A DNA stretch of 63,951 bases, filler included, from Octopus bimaculoides (GCF_001194135.2; 7 parts of 6 records of this genome joined end to end with filler, not necessarily neighbours in it), one strand, 5' to 3'; positions 26,610 to 43,603 are shown, counted from the whole stretch's first letter. Numbers and translations: made by a program. The notes: generated from the sequence alone by a model not told the origin.

Positions 26610-26675
26610 ACGTAAAGCAATTAAACAACTTCTCAGCCCAAACCAAACTCTAGTTAGTGTGCCGTATTTTCCAAG
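26610..26675 (+). CDS. GCLC: GCLC-like gene, first visible exon: (R)RKAIKQLLSPNQTLVSVPYFP(R)
   Basis: Flanked by attttag and gtaagt; 66 nt, phase 2-2. Aligns to RRKEATSILEENQALCTITSFPR of vertebrate GCLC (recalled sequence). Joins the next exon in frame. Confidence 0.8.
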
Positions 26676-26725
26676 GTAAGTGAAATCTTGAAGCTAATAT
26701 TTATGCACGATTTTTTACGTAAATA

Positions 26726-26942
26726 CAAGGGTGTGCTGAAAAGTTCCTGGCTTTGGGTAACAGAAAATAGAGGAGGATCAATTAATTATGATTTTATTCA
26801 ACATATTCTCCTCTCAGATTCACATGCTTATTGCAGCAGCCCTTCAGTTTTTCTAAGCCCTTTAAAAGAACTCGGAAGGTTGGGTCTCCAGCCAGGCCTT
26901 TCACGATACCCGTAAAGCCAGAAACGTTTCAGTAGCCCCTTG
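26726..26942. mobile_element. Mariner-derived MITE
   Basis: Imperfect TIRs CAAGGGTGTGCTGAAAAGTTCCTGGCTTT ... AAAGCCAGAAACGTTTCAGTAGCCCCTTG, each flanked by TA; no coding capacity. Confidence 0.75.
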
Positions 26943-27037
26943 TATTTACGTATAAGTTTGTTTCTGAGTAAATACAGCTTTATATTTTTATGTGAAAATA
27001 CATGTATTTTTATTAAACCTTTTTGTGAATGAATATA

Positions 27038-28262
27038 CAGGGGTTGGACAAAATAATGGAAACACCGAGCATCATAGCATCAAAATTTTGAAATATCTAT
27101 AAAACTGTCAAAAGTTTATTTATTTTTGTTTTTTTGATTTATTATTAGTGTTGCTTAATATGTTTTGCTAAAATTGCTATTTCTTTTCAGATATCCTCAG
27201 AAAAAGGTAATTAAAATTCATTAAAATGACAGTTCTATTGGACTTTCAAGGAGGTCAAATTGGCAGGCGCTAGTGTAACGAAAACAGCCGAAATGTTTGG
27301 TGTATCAAGAAGTACTGTCTCGAAAGTAATGACAGCCTTTAAGAAAGCGGGAAAAACCTCCTCGTCAAAACAAAACTCCGGAAGAAAACCAACACTTTCA
27401 GATAGGGACCATCGGACTCTTACGAAAATTGTTAGGAAGGATCGCAAAAGTACAGCTCCCAAAATTACTGCAGAGCTTAATGACCACCTTGAGAACCCAG
27501 TTTCCACAAAAACTGTTCGCTGGGAGCTGCAATCAGAAAATCACTACTTTCAAAAACAAACGTTGCAAAGCGTTTAGAGTAGAGTAAAAACGTACAGAAT
27601 TGGTCCCTAGAGAAGTAGAAGAATGTTATTTTCTCGGACGAGTTATCCTTTACCTTATTTCCGACAACCGGCCGAGTATATGTGTGGAGACAGCCAAAAG
27701 AAGCATTTGACCCAGACTACATTCTTCCAACTGTTAAACATGGAGGAGGATCTGTTATGATCTGGGGGCTATACCTGGGAAATCCGCTGGCCCAATGGTT
27801 TCCCTTCTTGGTAGAATTAATAGTCAAGACTATTTAAGCATTTTATCTGATCAGATTCATCCTATGGCTGCAGAACTGTTTCTGGATGGAAACACAATCT
27901 TTCAGGATGATAATGTACCAATTCACACCGCTAACACTGTTACTGAATGGCACGAGGAACATTCTAGTGAAGTTGAACATCTTATCTGGCCACCACAGTC
28001 TCCGGATTACAATATTATTGAACATTTATGGTGCATTGTAGAAAAACAAGGAGTCGATATCCTCCACCATCATCACTACAAGAACTGGAGACTGTTTTGG
28101 CTGAAGAATGGACAAAAATTCTATTGGGAACAATTCAAACTTTGTTCGAGTCCATACCTCATAGAATTCAAGCTGTAATTACTGCTAAAGGCGGTCCTAC
28201 CCCATATTAAAATAAATTTGTTTGAAATTTTAAGGTGTTGCCATTATTTTGTCTAATCTCTG
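27038..28262 (+). mobile_element. Full-length but inactivated Tc1-family DNA transposon in a GCLC-like intron
   Basis: 29-bp TIRs (CAGGGGTTGGACAAAATAATGGAAACACC; 4 mismatches in the right copy) flanked by TA on both sides. Transposase motifs VIFSDE, FQDDNVPIH and WPPQSPDYNIIEHLW are broken by stops and frameshifts. Confidence 0.92.
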
Positions 28263-29244
28263 TATATGTCTGTTTATATAAATCTTTTACTTGTTTCAGT
28301 CATTAGACTGTGGCCATGTCGAAGTGGTCACGATGCAACATGAGATGAAGTGTTTTGCTCAAGAACACAACACACCACCCGGTCTGGGAATTGAAACCAC
28401 GATCTTGTGATCATGAATGCAACTTCCTAACCACTAGGCCATGTGCCCTCACAATACAAATAATAATAATGATAATAATGTTTCAAATTTTGCCACAAGG
28501 GCAGCAATTTGGGGGAAGGGGATAAGTCGATTACAGTGTTCAACTGGTACTTATTTTATCGCCCCCGAAAGGATGAAAGACAAAATTGACCTCAACGGAA
28601 TTTGAACTCAGAACGTATTGATGGGCAAAATACCACTAAGAATTTCGTCCAGGGCGCTAACGATTCTGCGTGCTCACTGCCTACAGCAACAGCAACTACA
28701 ACAACTACAACTACAACTACTCAAAATAATAATGATAATAACAATAATAATAAAAATAGCTTCAGGCTAAATAACAACATGGATGTACACTAAGAAGCTC
28801 TCCTCACAAAACAAACTTAATCCAACAACATCGGTGTGATGGAAGGAAAAATGTCGCAATACAACAGTGGGAAAAGTTCTGTTAAAGCAAAGGAACTAAA
28901 CAAATCAGAAAGACTTTTGTTATATGAGGTGTAGTTTCTTTCTTAAATGCATGGTGTCTCGATGCAGGATTAACTACTTTGAGCAGGATTGACTACTTAA
29001 CCTGAAGAAAATTCTAACTGGACCCTACCTTCAAGGTCATGCACTGTTTATCTTGGTATGAAATCACTGTGTCACGCATGTATGGCTCTGATGCATGTGC
29101 CTGGTGTACCCTTATCAGACGGGTTATCGTGATGGGTATACTGGGCTTCGTATATTTGTACCCCAGTGTCACTTTGATGGCATGTATTGCTTTCTCACTC
29201 AATAAAAATAATAATGATAATTAAAGAAAAATTTTCTTTTTCAG

Positions 29245-41189: not shown

Positions 41190-41860
41190 ATGAGACAACT
41201 TACTGAGGGCCACACACAAAATTTGTGGGTGGTGCAAAGTCCCAATCAGATCTGGGGTGACATGGTGGTGGAACAATGCAGTTGACAGGGCCATTAGAGC
41301 AAAGAAACAGGCTTTGCGGGACTGGAAGGGTCATAGCAGAAAGGAGCTATATTAAGCAGCCAGTGGGGAAGCCAGGAAGCAAGTATGATTAGCCAGAGGT
41401 GAAGCAAAAAGGAAAAAATATGCCAATGTTCTGCAGCATGAGGATCAGTTGCAAGACAGTGTGCCAGGGAAAATTGTGACGTTGTGGGAGAGAAGTGTGT
41501 TCGCGTTGATGATGGTTCACTTGCGGTTAGTGAGTCTGCAAAGAAAGAAGCTTGGAAGTACCATTACAAAAGGCTACTAAATGTAGAGAAATCACAGGAG
41601 AATGAGAGTCTGTCTGAGTCAAGAGAGGGACCAGCAATCCGAATAGACAGTAGCATGGTAGACAAAGTTATGAAGGCTATGAAGATGGGAAAAGCCTCTG
41701 GCCCATCTGGATCACCGTTGAGATGCTTAAAATATCTGGCAGTGTGGGTTTTGTTGACATTGTGAAAGCATTTGTCAGGGTTCCCTGATCTCGTATCTGG
41801 TGGGTAATGCAGAAGCTAGGGATAGACAAGTGGTTGGTGAGAGCTGTACAAGCCATGTAC
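41190..41860 (+). mobile_element. RTE-like LINE internal fragment
   Basis: Reads KEAWKYHYKRLLN and VMKAMKMGKASGPSG, from the region preceding the RT domain; frameshifted. Confidence 0.75.
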
Positions 41861-42782
41861 AGGGGGAAAAAAACCTCAGAAAATTCATAAATTTTACCAC
41901 TGCAGAGTATAAATAACTGAAGAGACTTAGAGTGTTGGCATTTCATTTATTTTATGATTTCCAATTGTTTCAGCAACATGATTGTAAGCAATCAAATAAC
42001 TTATCAATAGACATGGATGATATGGACAATTTAGTCATACATCCAATCAAGTAGGCAAGATTTTGCATTGGGTCCATTGGAAATGCAGTATGCAAATGTG
42101 CCATCCCAACACTAGATAATGCATAGCACAATGTCGGTGCTAAATTGTAAGAAGTCGAGAAAGAAGAATCATGTTAATTGTTTTTAAGGAAAGGTAAAAG
42201 GAAACAGAAAATACTTCTTCAGTTGCATTTGTCTGGCAATTCAATGATTGGAATATAAATTAGTCAATTTCCTGGTCGGTGATACAAACTTTATGTTCTG
42301 CTGAAGCAATCCACATCTGCACAGCAGGTCGGGTTTAATAAGCAAACACAAATAACTGCTTGTAAGATGTAACCCATAAATTCAGGAAAACCTAGACCAT
42401 CTCATCTTTTTAGGGGGGGGGGGGAATGTATTGTCTCAAATATCTTTTCCTTATTTAAGATGGTAGAAATCCATTTTAGGAAGATTATTTTGCTATTTCA
42501 AGCAGATCTATTGATCTAATAAAGTTTCTGTCGTTAGTACATTGTACTGGTGTTGACCGGTGAAGTCTCAGATGTGAAACTTGGCATGCTAGAAATAACA
42601 GGCAAATTTCCATCAAAGCAAGACTTATTGTTCTATAGAAGGAAGGTATACAGCACATATGCTAGGACACAACAACCTCCTAAGCAGACCGAGTGTAGAT
42701 ATGAATAGCATATGGGAACTGGTATTAAGGAAGGATAGGAAAATATTAGATTTATAAATCCTAACAATTCACTCCATAATTG

Positions 42783-43030
42783 CCCACGGGCATATAGCGT
42801 AGTGGTTAAGAGTGCAGGCTACTAACCTCAAGATTCTGAGTTCGATTCCAGGCAGTGACCTGAATAATAATAATAATAATAATAATAATAATAAAAACAT
42901 CGAAAAATACTTTAGGAATGAGACACCAGGTTTGAAATTTTCCCAAGATGCCTGATGAAGGTTGGAGGGTATATCAGCCGAAACGTTGTGTTAAGATGAG
43001 GACAAATATCCATCAAATGTAAATAAGGAA
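42783..43030 (+). mobile_element. tRNA-headed SINE-like element with a hammerhead-like motif in its 3' part
   Basis: A-box tagcgtagtgg and B-box gagttcgattcc, then (AAT)n, then CTGATGA..GAAACGTT at 42952-42987. Confidence 0.65.
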
Positions 43031-43464
43031 GGTATACATTCTATAATGTAGTCCTAGATAACTGTAATTAGCAATTATGTCATGCTGACATAATCGCTAC
43101 ATTACAGGATGACGTTCCAGCTTTAATGGTCACAACTGGACCATCTTTTGTCTTTGAATGTAACCTTTACTTATGAGGGTTGAGTTGGAGATAAACATCA
43201 TCATTGTCATCATCATCATCATTATTACCATCATCATCATCGCTGTCATTGTAATTGTGGTTGTCATCAGTGCCCTCATCATTATCTTTGTCGTTGTCCT
43301 TCACATTCATATAATGAATTTTTTAATTGTTTTCTAATTTAATTGAAAACCCTTTATTATAGGTGGACTCAGGTGGGTTGGTATTAAACAAGTTTTATAA
43401 AAGAATAAATTTCATAAAATTAACTGGTTTTTTTTTTTACTATACTGCCTTCTCTTCCTTTTAG

Positions 43465-43603
43465 CCTTTGACAGAAGGCAAAGTTTTAGTGGACAAAACT
43501 GGCTTTGATTCAATAGGAAGATACATTTCTGTGGACAACCAATTTTATAATGACTATGATTACTGTTATGACCATAGGCAGTATGAATTACTAAAGGCTG
43601 AAG
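43465..43603 (+). CDS. GCLC: GCLC-like exon, last visible: PLTEGKVLVDKTGFDSIGRYISVDNQFYNDYDYCYDHRQYELLKAE(G)
   Basis: Flanked by cttccttttag and gtattt; 139 nt, phase 0-1. Aligns to PLKNNNYRISKSRYDSIDSYLS..YND..YEQLLQEG. The six exons total 716 nt in one open frame. Confidence 0.88.

Follow-up and report, generated by a model that had tools for sequence, protein, structure and literature searches.

A glutamate-cysteine ligase-like gene of Octopus bimaculoides with retained catalytic residues and replaced substrate-pocket residues belongs to an octopod paralog family

GCLC, the catalytic subunit of glutamate-cysteine ligase (GCL), is near-universal, usually encoded by a single-copy gene and rate-limiting in glutathione synthesis, and few active sites in animals are conserved as strictly as its own. 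Here, we describe a GCLC-like gene in a stretch of 63,951 nucleotides from Octopus bimaculoides (GCF_001194135.2), which consists of seven parts of six records joined end to end with filler and is called the window below. The gene, which we name lineage A, lies on the plus strand of the part at window positions 24845-44111. This part is identical to CM046630.1 (GCA_001194135.2; locus L002, 17240-36506), and N gaps flank it on both sides. Splicing of the six exons found in the window, each of which is bounded by AG and GT, yields 716 nt, which can be read as 238 uninterrupted codons at frame offset 1. The exons are numbers 4-9 of 16, numbered according to the O. sinensis ortholog XP_029652703.1. 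Exon 4 (26610-26675; 66 nt), which starts in codon phase 1 and encodes (R)RKAIKQLLSPNQTLVSVPYFP(R), matches its O. sinensis counterpart at 65 of 66 nt. Exon 5 (29245-29361; 117 nt) encodes LGCPNFTFPSYKANKHPVELHQSVFIGDAALCSQTPYY, in which TPYY is present in place of HPRF (H183 and R185; human numbering is used hereafter unless yeast is named). Exon 6 (30708-30766; 59 nt; ITSYKNFAKRRQERMVINVP) retains the RR..VINVP motif as RRQERMVINVP. Exon 7 (37048-37265; 218 nt; LYKDKNTVMPYGEDL...GHIYMDTKLFGVCCCVIQVTFQAAGVKEAAYLFDNFVPLTPIM) has other residues in place of the MGFGMG loop and C249; the motif in this region reads MDTKLFGVCCCVIQVTFQ, and Q251 and Q255 are retained. Exon 8 (40264-40380; 117 nt) carries DSAW, in which R296 (yeast R313) is changed to alanine specifically in lineage A. 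Exon 9 (43465-43603; 139 nt; PLTEGKVLVDKTGFDSIGRYISVDNQFYNDYDYCYDHRQYELLKAE(G)) carries KTGF, in which the lineage-A-specific change of R328 to glycine is followed by Y329 to phenylalanine (yeast Y362). The QVTFQ motif is also retained in the product. An earlier note on this stretch had described six spliced exons with a 238-codon open frame, the four altered motifs in these exons and the two retained ones, and our reading agrees with it on all these points.

The assignment to GCLC was examined by sequence searches. With a human GCLC sequence as the query, tblastn matched two of the window exons (E = 4.6e-16 and 1.2e-9). The spliced product showed 99% identity to O. bimaculoides XP_014788601.1 (E = 3.7e-103) and is contained in the newer model XP_052834018.1. 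Thus, the matches of the window to GCLC are not due to chance. The intron between exons 6 and 7 (30767-37047, plus strand; 6281 nt) holds all three assembly gaps (31201-31300, 32331-32405 and 35606-36496) together with transposon-like open reading frames (ORFs) and a (TA)75 microsatellite (34084-34234). Because all of the gaps are in this one intron, the O. sinensis counterpart is gap-free (1965 nt) with no additional exon, and the O. sinensis protein is continuous across the exon 6/7 joint (VINVP followed by LY.DKN), the gaps leave the reading frame untouched. The same intron contains the cryptic ATG and GT "first exon" of the old RefSeq model XP_014788601.1, which encodes MENAIGI (32706-32727, plus strand). 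This start is most likely an annotation artefact.

The earlier note had regarded the gene as a paralog, and this holds: a canonical GCLC (XP_052823647.1) is encoded on another chromosome of the same genome (CM046604.1). Canonical GCLC is also present in O. sinensis, O. vulgaris and Argonauta hians, and it shows 96% identity between O. bimaculoides and O. sinensis (this comparison between species is protein identity, in place of the ratio of nonsynonymous to synonymous substitution rates, dN/dS or omega). The GCLC-like proteins, which are about 606 aa long, form a separate set with at least seven lineages (A-G) in Octopus and one in Argonauta, and members of this clade were found in all four of these species. 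The O. sinensis and O. vulgaris orthologs of lineage A carry the same substitutions, including TPYY, DSAW and KTGF. In O. sinensis, the paralogs are located on one 20-Mb chromosome, where A and B form a tandem pair (12.15-12.22 Mb) and D maps to 16.0 Mb. Thus, the family now numbers at least seven genes, which form two clusters on a single O. sinensis chromosome. Exons E1, E4-E10, E12 and E13 match their canonical counterparts in length. Therefore, the duplication occurred at the DNA level and not by retroposition. A processed retrocopy was ruled out: the gene has 16 exons, and the parental introns are present.

In neighbour-joining (NJ) trees, the octopod GCLC-like clade is monophyletic with 100% bootstrap support, and the Argonauta copy is placed outside all Octopus copies (92-98%). 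When 1.84 billion cluster representatives were searched with a profile, the octopod clade was recovered as a single 50% cluster (1054 bits). The next match was canonical GCLC (659 bits), and nothing non-octopod was closer to the clade than canonical GCLC. When other long branches were left out, the clade was sister to cephalopod canonical GCLC (98%). When they were included, its root was drawn to a mite sequence, and this attachment is long-branch attraction. Of the derived states of octopod canonical GCLC, 6 of 16 are shared by the clade, as compared with 10 of 96 in other divergent GCLC-likes (p = 0.011). This result favours an origin in the cephalopod lineage, but is not decisive. The window gene is not an ortholog of the single-copy animal GCLC: it occupies a separate locus on another chromosome and belongs to a distinct clade.

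To place the substitutions, we used 100 canonical metazoan GCLCs, in which 184 alignment columns are at least 97% invariant. Conservation in these proteins is 100% for H183, R185, M241, M245, G246, C249, R296 and R328, and 99% for Y329. The octopod paralogs differ from them at 45-59 of the 184 near-invariant columns, and 38 columns are changed in at least seven of eight lineages. Lineage A, whose identity to octopus canonical GCLC is about 50%, is changed at 59. The changes can be divided into two groups. Clade-wide changes are T105K, G107R/K, H183x, R185x, M241x, M245x, C249S/A/V, H370Y, F398I, E399Q and R423K (x, various residues), and Y329F is found in most of the paralog lineages. In contrast, R296A, R328G, G246S/C, W406G, R377K, D396G and T145P are found only in lineage A. 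In the window itself, R185 is replaced by Y, and M241K, M245V, G246C and C249V are encoded. The W406 to glycine change is encoded by exon 11 (L002 46591-46677, "NSNGHSL"), which lies beyond the part of the window described here. All five substrate-contact positions (R185, R296, R328, Y329 and W406) are changed in lineage A. The earlier note had stated that the motifs change together. This is only partly correct, as the changes arose in two layers: those in HPRF, MGFGMG, C249 and, mostly, Y329 are basal to the clade, and those at R296, R328, G246 and W406 are specific to lineage A.

We then compared the same positions among 149 diverse representatives of eukaryote-type GCLs. R328 is conserved in 149 of 149 and R296 in 143 of 146. 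W406 is tryptophan in 142 and tyrosine in 5, and R185 is arginine in 134. Y329 is tyrosine in 114, phenylalanine in 12 and tryptophan in 10. R296A, R328G and W406G, which are unique to lineage A, are essentially absent from these representatives, as is G246S/C, and none of the 149 is without both arginines (R296 and R328). Thus, both this set and the metazoan set bear out the expectation that the substitutions are uncommon in ordinary GCLCs. Because only 114 of the 149 representatives have tyrosine at position 329, the Tyr to Phe change is the weakest of the motif claims. The earlier note had emphasized the loss of this tyrosine from KSRY. The change is present, but the most invariant residue lost from the motif is the arginine, R328.

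Assignment of roles to these residues relied on the yeast enzyme. Yeast R313 is reportedly a ligand of the glutamate alpha-carboxylate in the work of Biterova and Barycki from 2009, and a role of Trypanosoma brucei R366 is said to have been described by Abbott and colleagues in 2002. We take the residues of HPRF and MGFGMG to be part of the cysteine site. On this assignment, the glutamate alpha-carboxylate ligands (R296/R313 and Y329/Y362) are both replaced in lineage A (DSAW and KTGF). The residues of the cysteine site (W406/W445, the HPRF arginine, the MGFGMG loop and C249) are all replaced as well. Alignment to the yeast structure 3IG5 confirmed the numbering given in the earlier note, with R313 as the DxRW arginine and Y362 as the KSRY tyrosine, and showed that W445 corresponds to human W406. 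The contact of Y362 with the glutamate alpha-carboxylate is documented: in yeast GCL, the Y362 hydroxyl contacts glutamate OXT, W445 NE1 contacts the cysteine O and R472 contacts glutamate OE2 (PMC5613772, Table 3). The same table lists E50, E52, E96 and E103 as Mg2+ ligands. The active Leishmania gamma-glutamylcysteine synthetase has alanine at the position of C249 (PMC5613772). Therefore, the Cys to Val change at this position alone is not disabling.

In contrast to the pocket residues, D49, E50, E52, E96, E103, Q251, Q255, K412, E425, R427 and E430 are unchanged in every octopod paralog, O. sinensis lineage A included. They include the Mg2+ ligands (E50, E52, E96, E103 and E425), the ADP-contacting lysine (K412) and the arginine for the gamma-carboxylate or phosphate (R427) of canonical GCLC. 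When 59 of 184 near-invariant positions are changed, the chance of no change at 9-11 catalytic positions is about 0.01-0.03. Only Q251 and Q255 are encoded in the window itself. In the O. bimaculoides locus, E52, K412, E425 and R427 are seen, and E50, E96 and E103 are in exons hidden by gaps. Thus, the metal-binding glutamates, which the earlier note had placed in missing exons, are intact in the O. sinensis ortholog, and three of them are concealed in the O. bimaculoides assembly. The Pfam domain GCS (PF03074) matched the O. sinensis ortholog with 414 bits (E = 6.7e-124; cutoff, 25) and is also precomputed for the window gene. For isoform X2 of the O. sinensis ortholog, AlphaFold2 gave a model with a mean predicted local distance difference test score (pLDDT) of 86.7 and a predicted template modelling score (pTM) of 0.90. 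Foldseek aligned this model to yeast GCL (3ig5) with E = 1.7e-38 and a template modelling score (TM) of 0.87. The 16-exon layout of the octopus canonical gene, the QVTFQ motif and the C-terminal helix region are likewise shared. Therefore, the gene encodes a member of the GCL-fold family in the broad sense, which differs from canonical GCLC by the lack of R185, R296, R328, the Y329 hydroxyl, W406, C249, the MGFGMG loop and the last ~40 residues.

Selection on lineage A was measured between O. bimaculoides and O. sinensis over 492 shared codons, in which there are 59 nucleotide and 27 amino-acid differences. The dN value was 0.024 and the dS value was 0.11, and omega was 0.21 (0.14-0.18 for the 238 codons of the window). 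Nonsynonymous changes make up 27.5 of the 59 although 79.5% of the sites are nonsynonymous (binomial p = 5e-8 against neutrality), and conservation is 4.4 times higher at nonsynonymous than at synonymous sites. The mismatch of aligned introns is about 10%, in line with dS. For paralog D, which keeps DCRW and KSRY/F, omega was 0.17-0.21 over 425 codons; only exons 1-12 were used because the RefSeq protein and the genome disagree at one residue beyond exon 12. Because the two omegas are alike, lineage A is now as constrained as this less diverged sister. No stop codon, frameshift or lost splice site was seen in the 13 exons present in the O. bimaculoides assembly (three exons are unassembled), and omega is far from 1. 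Thus, as the earlier note had judged for the window segment, the exons are open in two species and not pseudogenised, and these results indicate that the gene is functional and selectively maintained.

The evolutionary rate of lineage A differed in the past. Since their split, lineage A has evolved faster than every sister paralog, with 63-78 unique changes as compared with 27-49 (Tajima tests, p = 2e-5 to 0.05), and has 8 unique hits on invariant columns as compared with 1-3 in the other paralogs. In the comparison of A with D, dS was 0.6-0.7 and omega was 0.26-0.30. When dN was divided according to the Tajima counts, omega was roughly 0.4 on the lineage-A stem and 0.2 afterwards. This rough estimate suggests a burst of protein change followed by constraint, with no sign of omega above 1.

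The sister paralogs provide an internal comparison. XP_036370436.1 (D) and XP_029652730.2 (C) from O. sinensis, QHX41528.1 from O. vulgaris and the Argonauta hians GCLC-like protein share the clade, the exon structure and the length of ~606 aa with lineage A. They also share T105K, G107R/K, H183x, R185x, M241x, M245x, C249S, H370Y, F398I and R423K, and have similar omega values. In contrast to lineage A, which was significantly faster on its stem, they keep R296, R328 and W406. Because these three residues are kept, the sister paralogs probably still bind glutamate, whereas lineage A probably does not.

Gene structure, paralogy, the conservation pattern, selection and the fold were read directly from the data; from these, we infer catalysis and the nature of the substrates as follows. 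Canonical GCLC was duplicated at the DNA level, with the original kept elsewhere in the genome, and the copies gave rise to an octopod-specific family. Throughout this family, the GCL fold and the residues for Mg2+, ATP and activation of the gamma-carboxylate were kept, and the residues of the amine-acceptor (cysteine) pocket were replaced. Lineage A then lost R296, R328, the Y329 hydroxyl and W406 following faster protein evolution, and ordinary purifying selection resumed. The present protein is probably an ATP-dependent carboxylate-amine ligase, which works via an acyl-phosphate and does not produce gamma-glutamylcysteine. Its acyl donor would be a compound whose alpha-carboxylate is absent or modified, and its amine acceptor would be a compound other than cysteine. 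A donor without a free alpha-carboxylate fits because two arginines and a tyrosine hydroxyl around the alpha-carboxylate site are lost. A non-cysteine amine fits because R185 is lost clade-wide and the MGFGMG loop is remodelled. On balance, we lean toward this proposal, that lineage A is a still-catalytic carboxylate-amine ligase which no longer joins glutamate and cysteine. The earlier note had proposed a neofunctionalised paralog. Paralogy is confirmed and the survival of the Mg2+/ATP residues favours a ligase with a new substrate, but the gene is not alone: it is one of at least seven octopod genes. GABA or beta-alanine as the acyl donor and a crystallin-like role, which the note had also put forward, are conjectural.

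Several points weigh against a ligase with a new substrate. For R296/R313, R328 and the HPRF and MGFGMG residues, the assumed roles come from general background and from a modelling paper. The conserved metal ligands are also in keeping with a nucleotide-binding, non-ligating protein, and an omega of 0.21 is evidence of constraint, not of catalysis. Exons 1 (WGDE), 3 (PEY..IEG) and 13, among which are metal-ligand exons, were not found in the O. bimaculoides locus L002. Furthermore, long-branch attraction makes the rooting of the clade unstable in NJ analyses.

The main alternative is a non-catalytic pseudoenzyme, in which the GCL fold, perhaps with bound nucleotide, has a structural, regulatory or binding role, for example as a partner of the modifier subunit GCLM or of a paralog, as a decoy or as an abundant tissue protein like a crystallin. 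We regard this alternative as possible, although clearly less probable than a ligase. Both glutamate alpha-carboxylate ligands and the cysteine-contacting tryptophan are lost, and the loss of R328, which is otherwise invariant, may preclude any ligation. The C-terminal ~55 residues, which are near-identical to those of octopod canonical GCLC, would fit a protein-protein interface, and a structural role predicts purifying selection equally. However, pseudoenzymes usually lose the residues for Mg2+, ATP and acyl-phosphate, and here 11 of 11 such residues are intact though a third of otherwise invariant positions are changed. In addition, the intermediate pockets of the sister paralogs suggest a graded change of specificity, not inactivation. 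None of the octopus GCLC clusters, canonical ones included, contains members from the Logan assemblies, which therefore do not bear on expression in either direction. Because the catalytic Mg2+/ATP residues survive, we favour a ligase with a new substrate over a dead scaffold.

It is improbable that lineage A is a decaying duplicate, in which constraint is relaxed, the active-site changes are the first disabling hits and the missing exons are real deletions. This idea draws on the RefSeq model XP_052834018.1, which is without exons 1 and 3 and has exon 13 swapped for read-through sequence, with patched splice sites. It also draws on the branch of lineage A, which is the longest among the Octopus paralogs and has the most hits on invariant columns, and on the rough stem omega of ~0.4. 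However, omega since the split of O. bimaculoides and O. sinensis is equal to that of sister D, with a clear departure from neutrality. The 13 assembled exons are all open with intact AG/GT sites, and the O. sinensis ortholog is complete (607 aa; 16 exons, with 15 GT-AG introns and 1 GC-AG intron as solved here). According to the O. sinensis spacing, the expected sites of exons 1, 3 and 13 all fall in N runs (L002 6040-8629, 11991-13659 or 15560-17239, and 49934-55508, respectively). Therefore, we treated the exon defects of the RefSeq model as assembly artefacts, true loss in O. bimaculoides being less probable, and we rejected the missing exons as support for decay.

Least probable of all is a genuine glutamate-cysteine ligase, that is, a tissue-specific or low-affinity isozyme in glutathione synthesis: the RefSeq name GCLC, the strong Pfam GCS match, the intact catalytic core and the occurrence of Y to F at 329 and non-Cys at 249 in other GCL family members (PMC5613772 among the sources) agree with it, but R296, R328, R185 and W406 are replaced jointly, both arginines being lost in none of the 149 other proteins, and a strongly conserved canonical GCLC is present.

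Returning to a ligase with a new substrate, similar cases are found outside the octopods. Mytilus XP_076117635.1, Tachypleus XP_076326354.1 and KAI1289761.1 from the mite Halotydeus are shortened (~575-610 aa) and have altered HPRF, MGFGMG and C249 with an intact catalytic core, as in lineage A. Unlike lineage A, they keep R296 and R328, and they do not group reliably with the octopod clade. They seem to stem from separate duplication events, and recurrent changes to the acceptor pocket may be common among invertebrate GCLC-likes. As candidate functional analogies, PuuA, GlnA3/GlnA4, YbdK and molluscan gamma-glutamylhistamine synthetase form an acyl-phosphate on a carboxylate, which is then attacked by an amine other than cysteine. 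Foldseek gave distant fold matches of the lineage-A model to YbdK and glutamine synthetase (GS). However, PuuA, GlnA3/GlnA4 and YbdK belong to other families (bacterial GS-like or GCS2), and lineage A is not a member of these at the sequence level. The S-crystallins (from glutathione S-transferase) and Omega-crystallin (from aldehyde dehydrogenase) are also cephalopod expansions of glutathione or detoxification enzymes with altered active sites. They belong to other families, and crystallins typically lose catalytic residues, whereas lineage A keeps them.

Several additional observations were made on the gene family. Exon 15 of O. sinensis lineage A is tandemly duplicated (L003 43765-43902 and 46278-46415), and the two copies are used alternatively by isoforms X2 and X1; the O. 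bimaculoides scaffold yielded a single copy. Paralog B (L001; O. sinensis CM016886.1, 12.14-12.17 Mb; O. bimaculoides XP_052834019.1) is annotated as 183 aa in both species. These models end by read-through of the exon-5 donor (...EYFM, then stop, and ...EYFV, then stop), and the O. vulgaris model has 513 aa. The short form may be a genuine isoform or may reflect truncated annotation. In paralog D (XP_036370436.1), at the exon 13 acceptor (L004 ~54120, O. sinensis), the protein has Val and the genome has Gly (GGT GAT GAA AAC) with a sole AG acceptor; the mismatch could reflect a corrected gene model, an error in the sequence or RNA editing. The near-identical C-terminal ~55 residues of the octopod paralogs and octopod canonical GCLC (MAQWTRQFV.NHEDYKNDSVVS..I.YDF.MEC), which are encoded outside the window, stand out against the overall identity and suggest that this segment forms a conserved surface for interactions or that the last exon underwent gene conversion.

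The introns contain mobile-element remnants. A degenerate Tc1/mariner transposase remnant (27260-28178, plus strand), which is not part of the gene product, lies in the intron after exon 4 (Pfam HTH_Tnp_Tc3_2, 3e-7; DDE_3, 1.5e-11). Further long intronic ORFs at 24797-25606, 31715-32236 and 33439-33630 (minus strand) and at 41484-41765 (plus strand) resemble retrotransposon or DNA-transposon fragments (for example, "...RLRWYGHVARM...GRPRKTW"). These four had no Pfam match at E <= 0.01. The length of the O. bimaculoides introns is 1.0-4.6 times that of their O. sinensis counterparts, and the transposon-like ORFs probably explain this difference. At 43866-44111, four copies of a 62-bp tandem repeat (95% identity) run into the end of the piece, and the repeat may be responsible for the assembly break there. 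ORF motifs resembling those of the repeat are also found in introns at ~39630-40010 and 34310-34590, which suggests a dispersed satellite or an element like a short interspersed nuclear element.

The existence of this gene is already known, in that RefSeq names it GCLC or GCLC-like. In our literature search, we found no paper on the octopod GCLC-like expansion or its altered pocket, and both appear to be undescribed. To our knowledge, no gene has been assigned to the gamma-glutamylhistamine synthetase of molluscs (Aplysia). A link between the octopod clade and molluscan chemistry of this type is our conjecture. Gamma-glutamylhistamine synthetase activity is reported for molluscan nervous tissue (Stein and Weinreich, 1983, as cited in PMC4472778), and GCLC can accept other amino acids as acceptors (bioRxiv 10.1101/2020.05.29.123802). 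In its boldest form, which we consider unlikely but worth stating, the octopod clade would represent the first case in animals of GCL-fold enzymes radiating into ATP-dependent amide ligases with new specificities, and these could underlie the conjugation of biogenic amines with gamma-glutamyl groups, which has long been known from mollusc biochemistry. In this view, the acyl donor of lineage A would have changed as well, with GABA or another omega-amino or dicarboxylic acid as examples, and its product would be a previously unassigned metabolite of octopus.

For these genes, the label "glutamate--cysteine ligase catalytic subunit" in RefSeq is probably a misnomer, and this matters for redox and transcriptome studies in which octopus "GCLC" reads are counted. 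The octopod family offers a natural experiment on how a carboxylate-amine ligase changes its specificity, with the core kept and the pockets remodelled under purifying selection throughout. Moreover, it points to amide and gamma-glutamyl chemistry of cephalopods that is still unexplored and that could concern, for example, osmolytes, venom or salivary products, or the inactivation of neurotransmitters.

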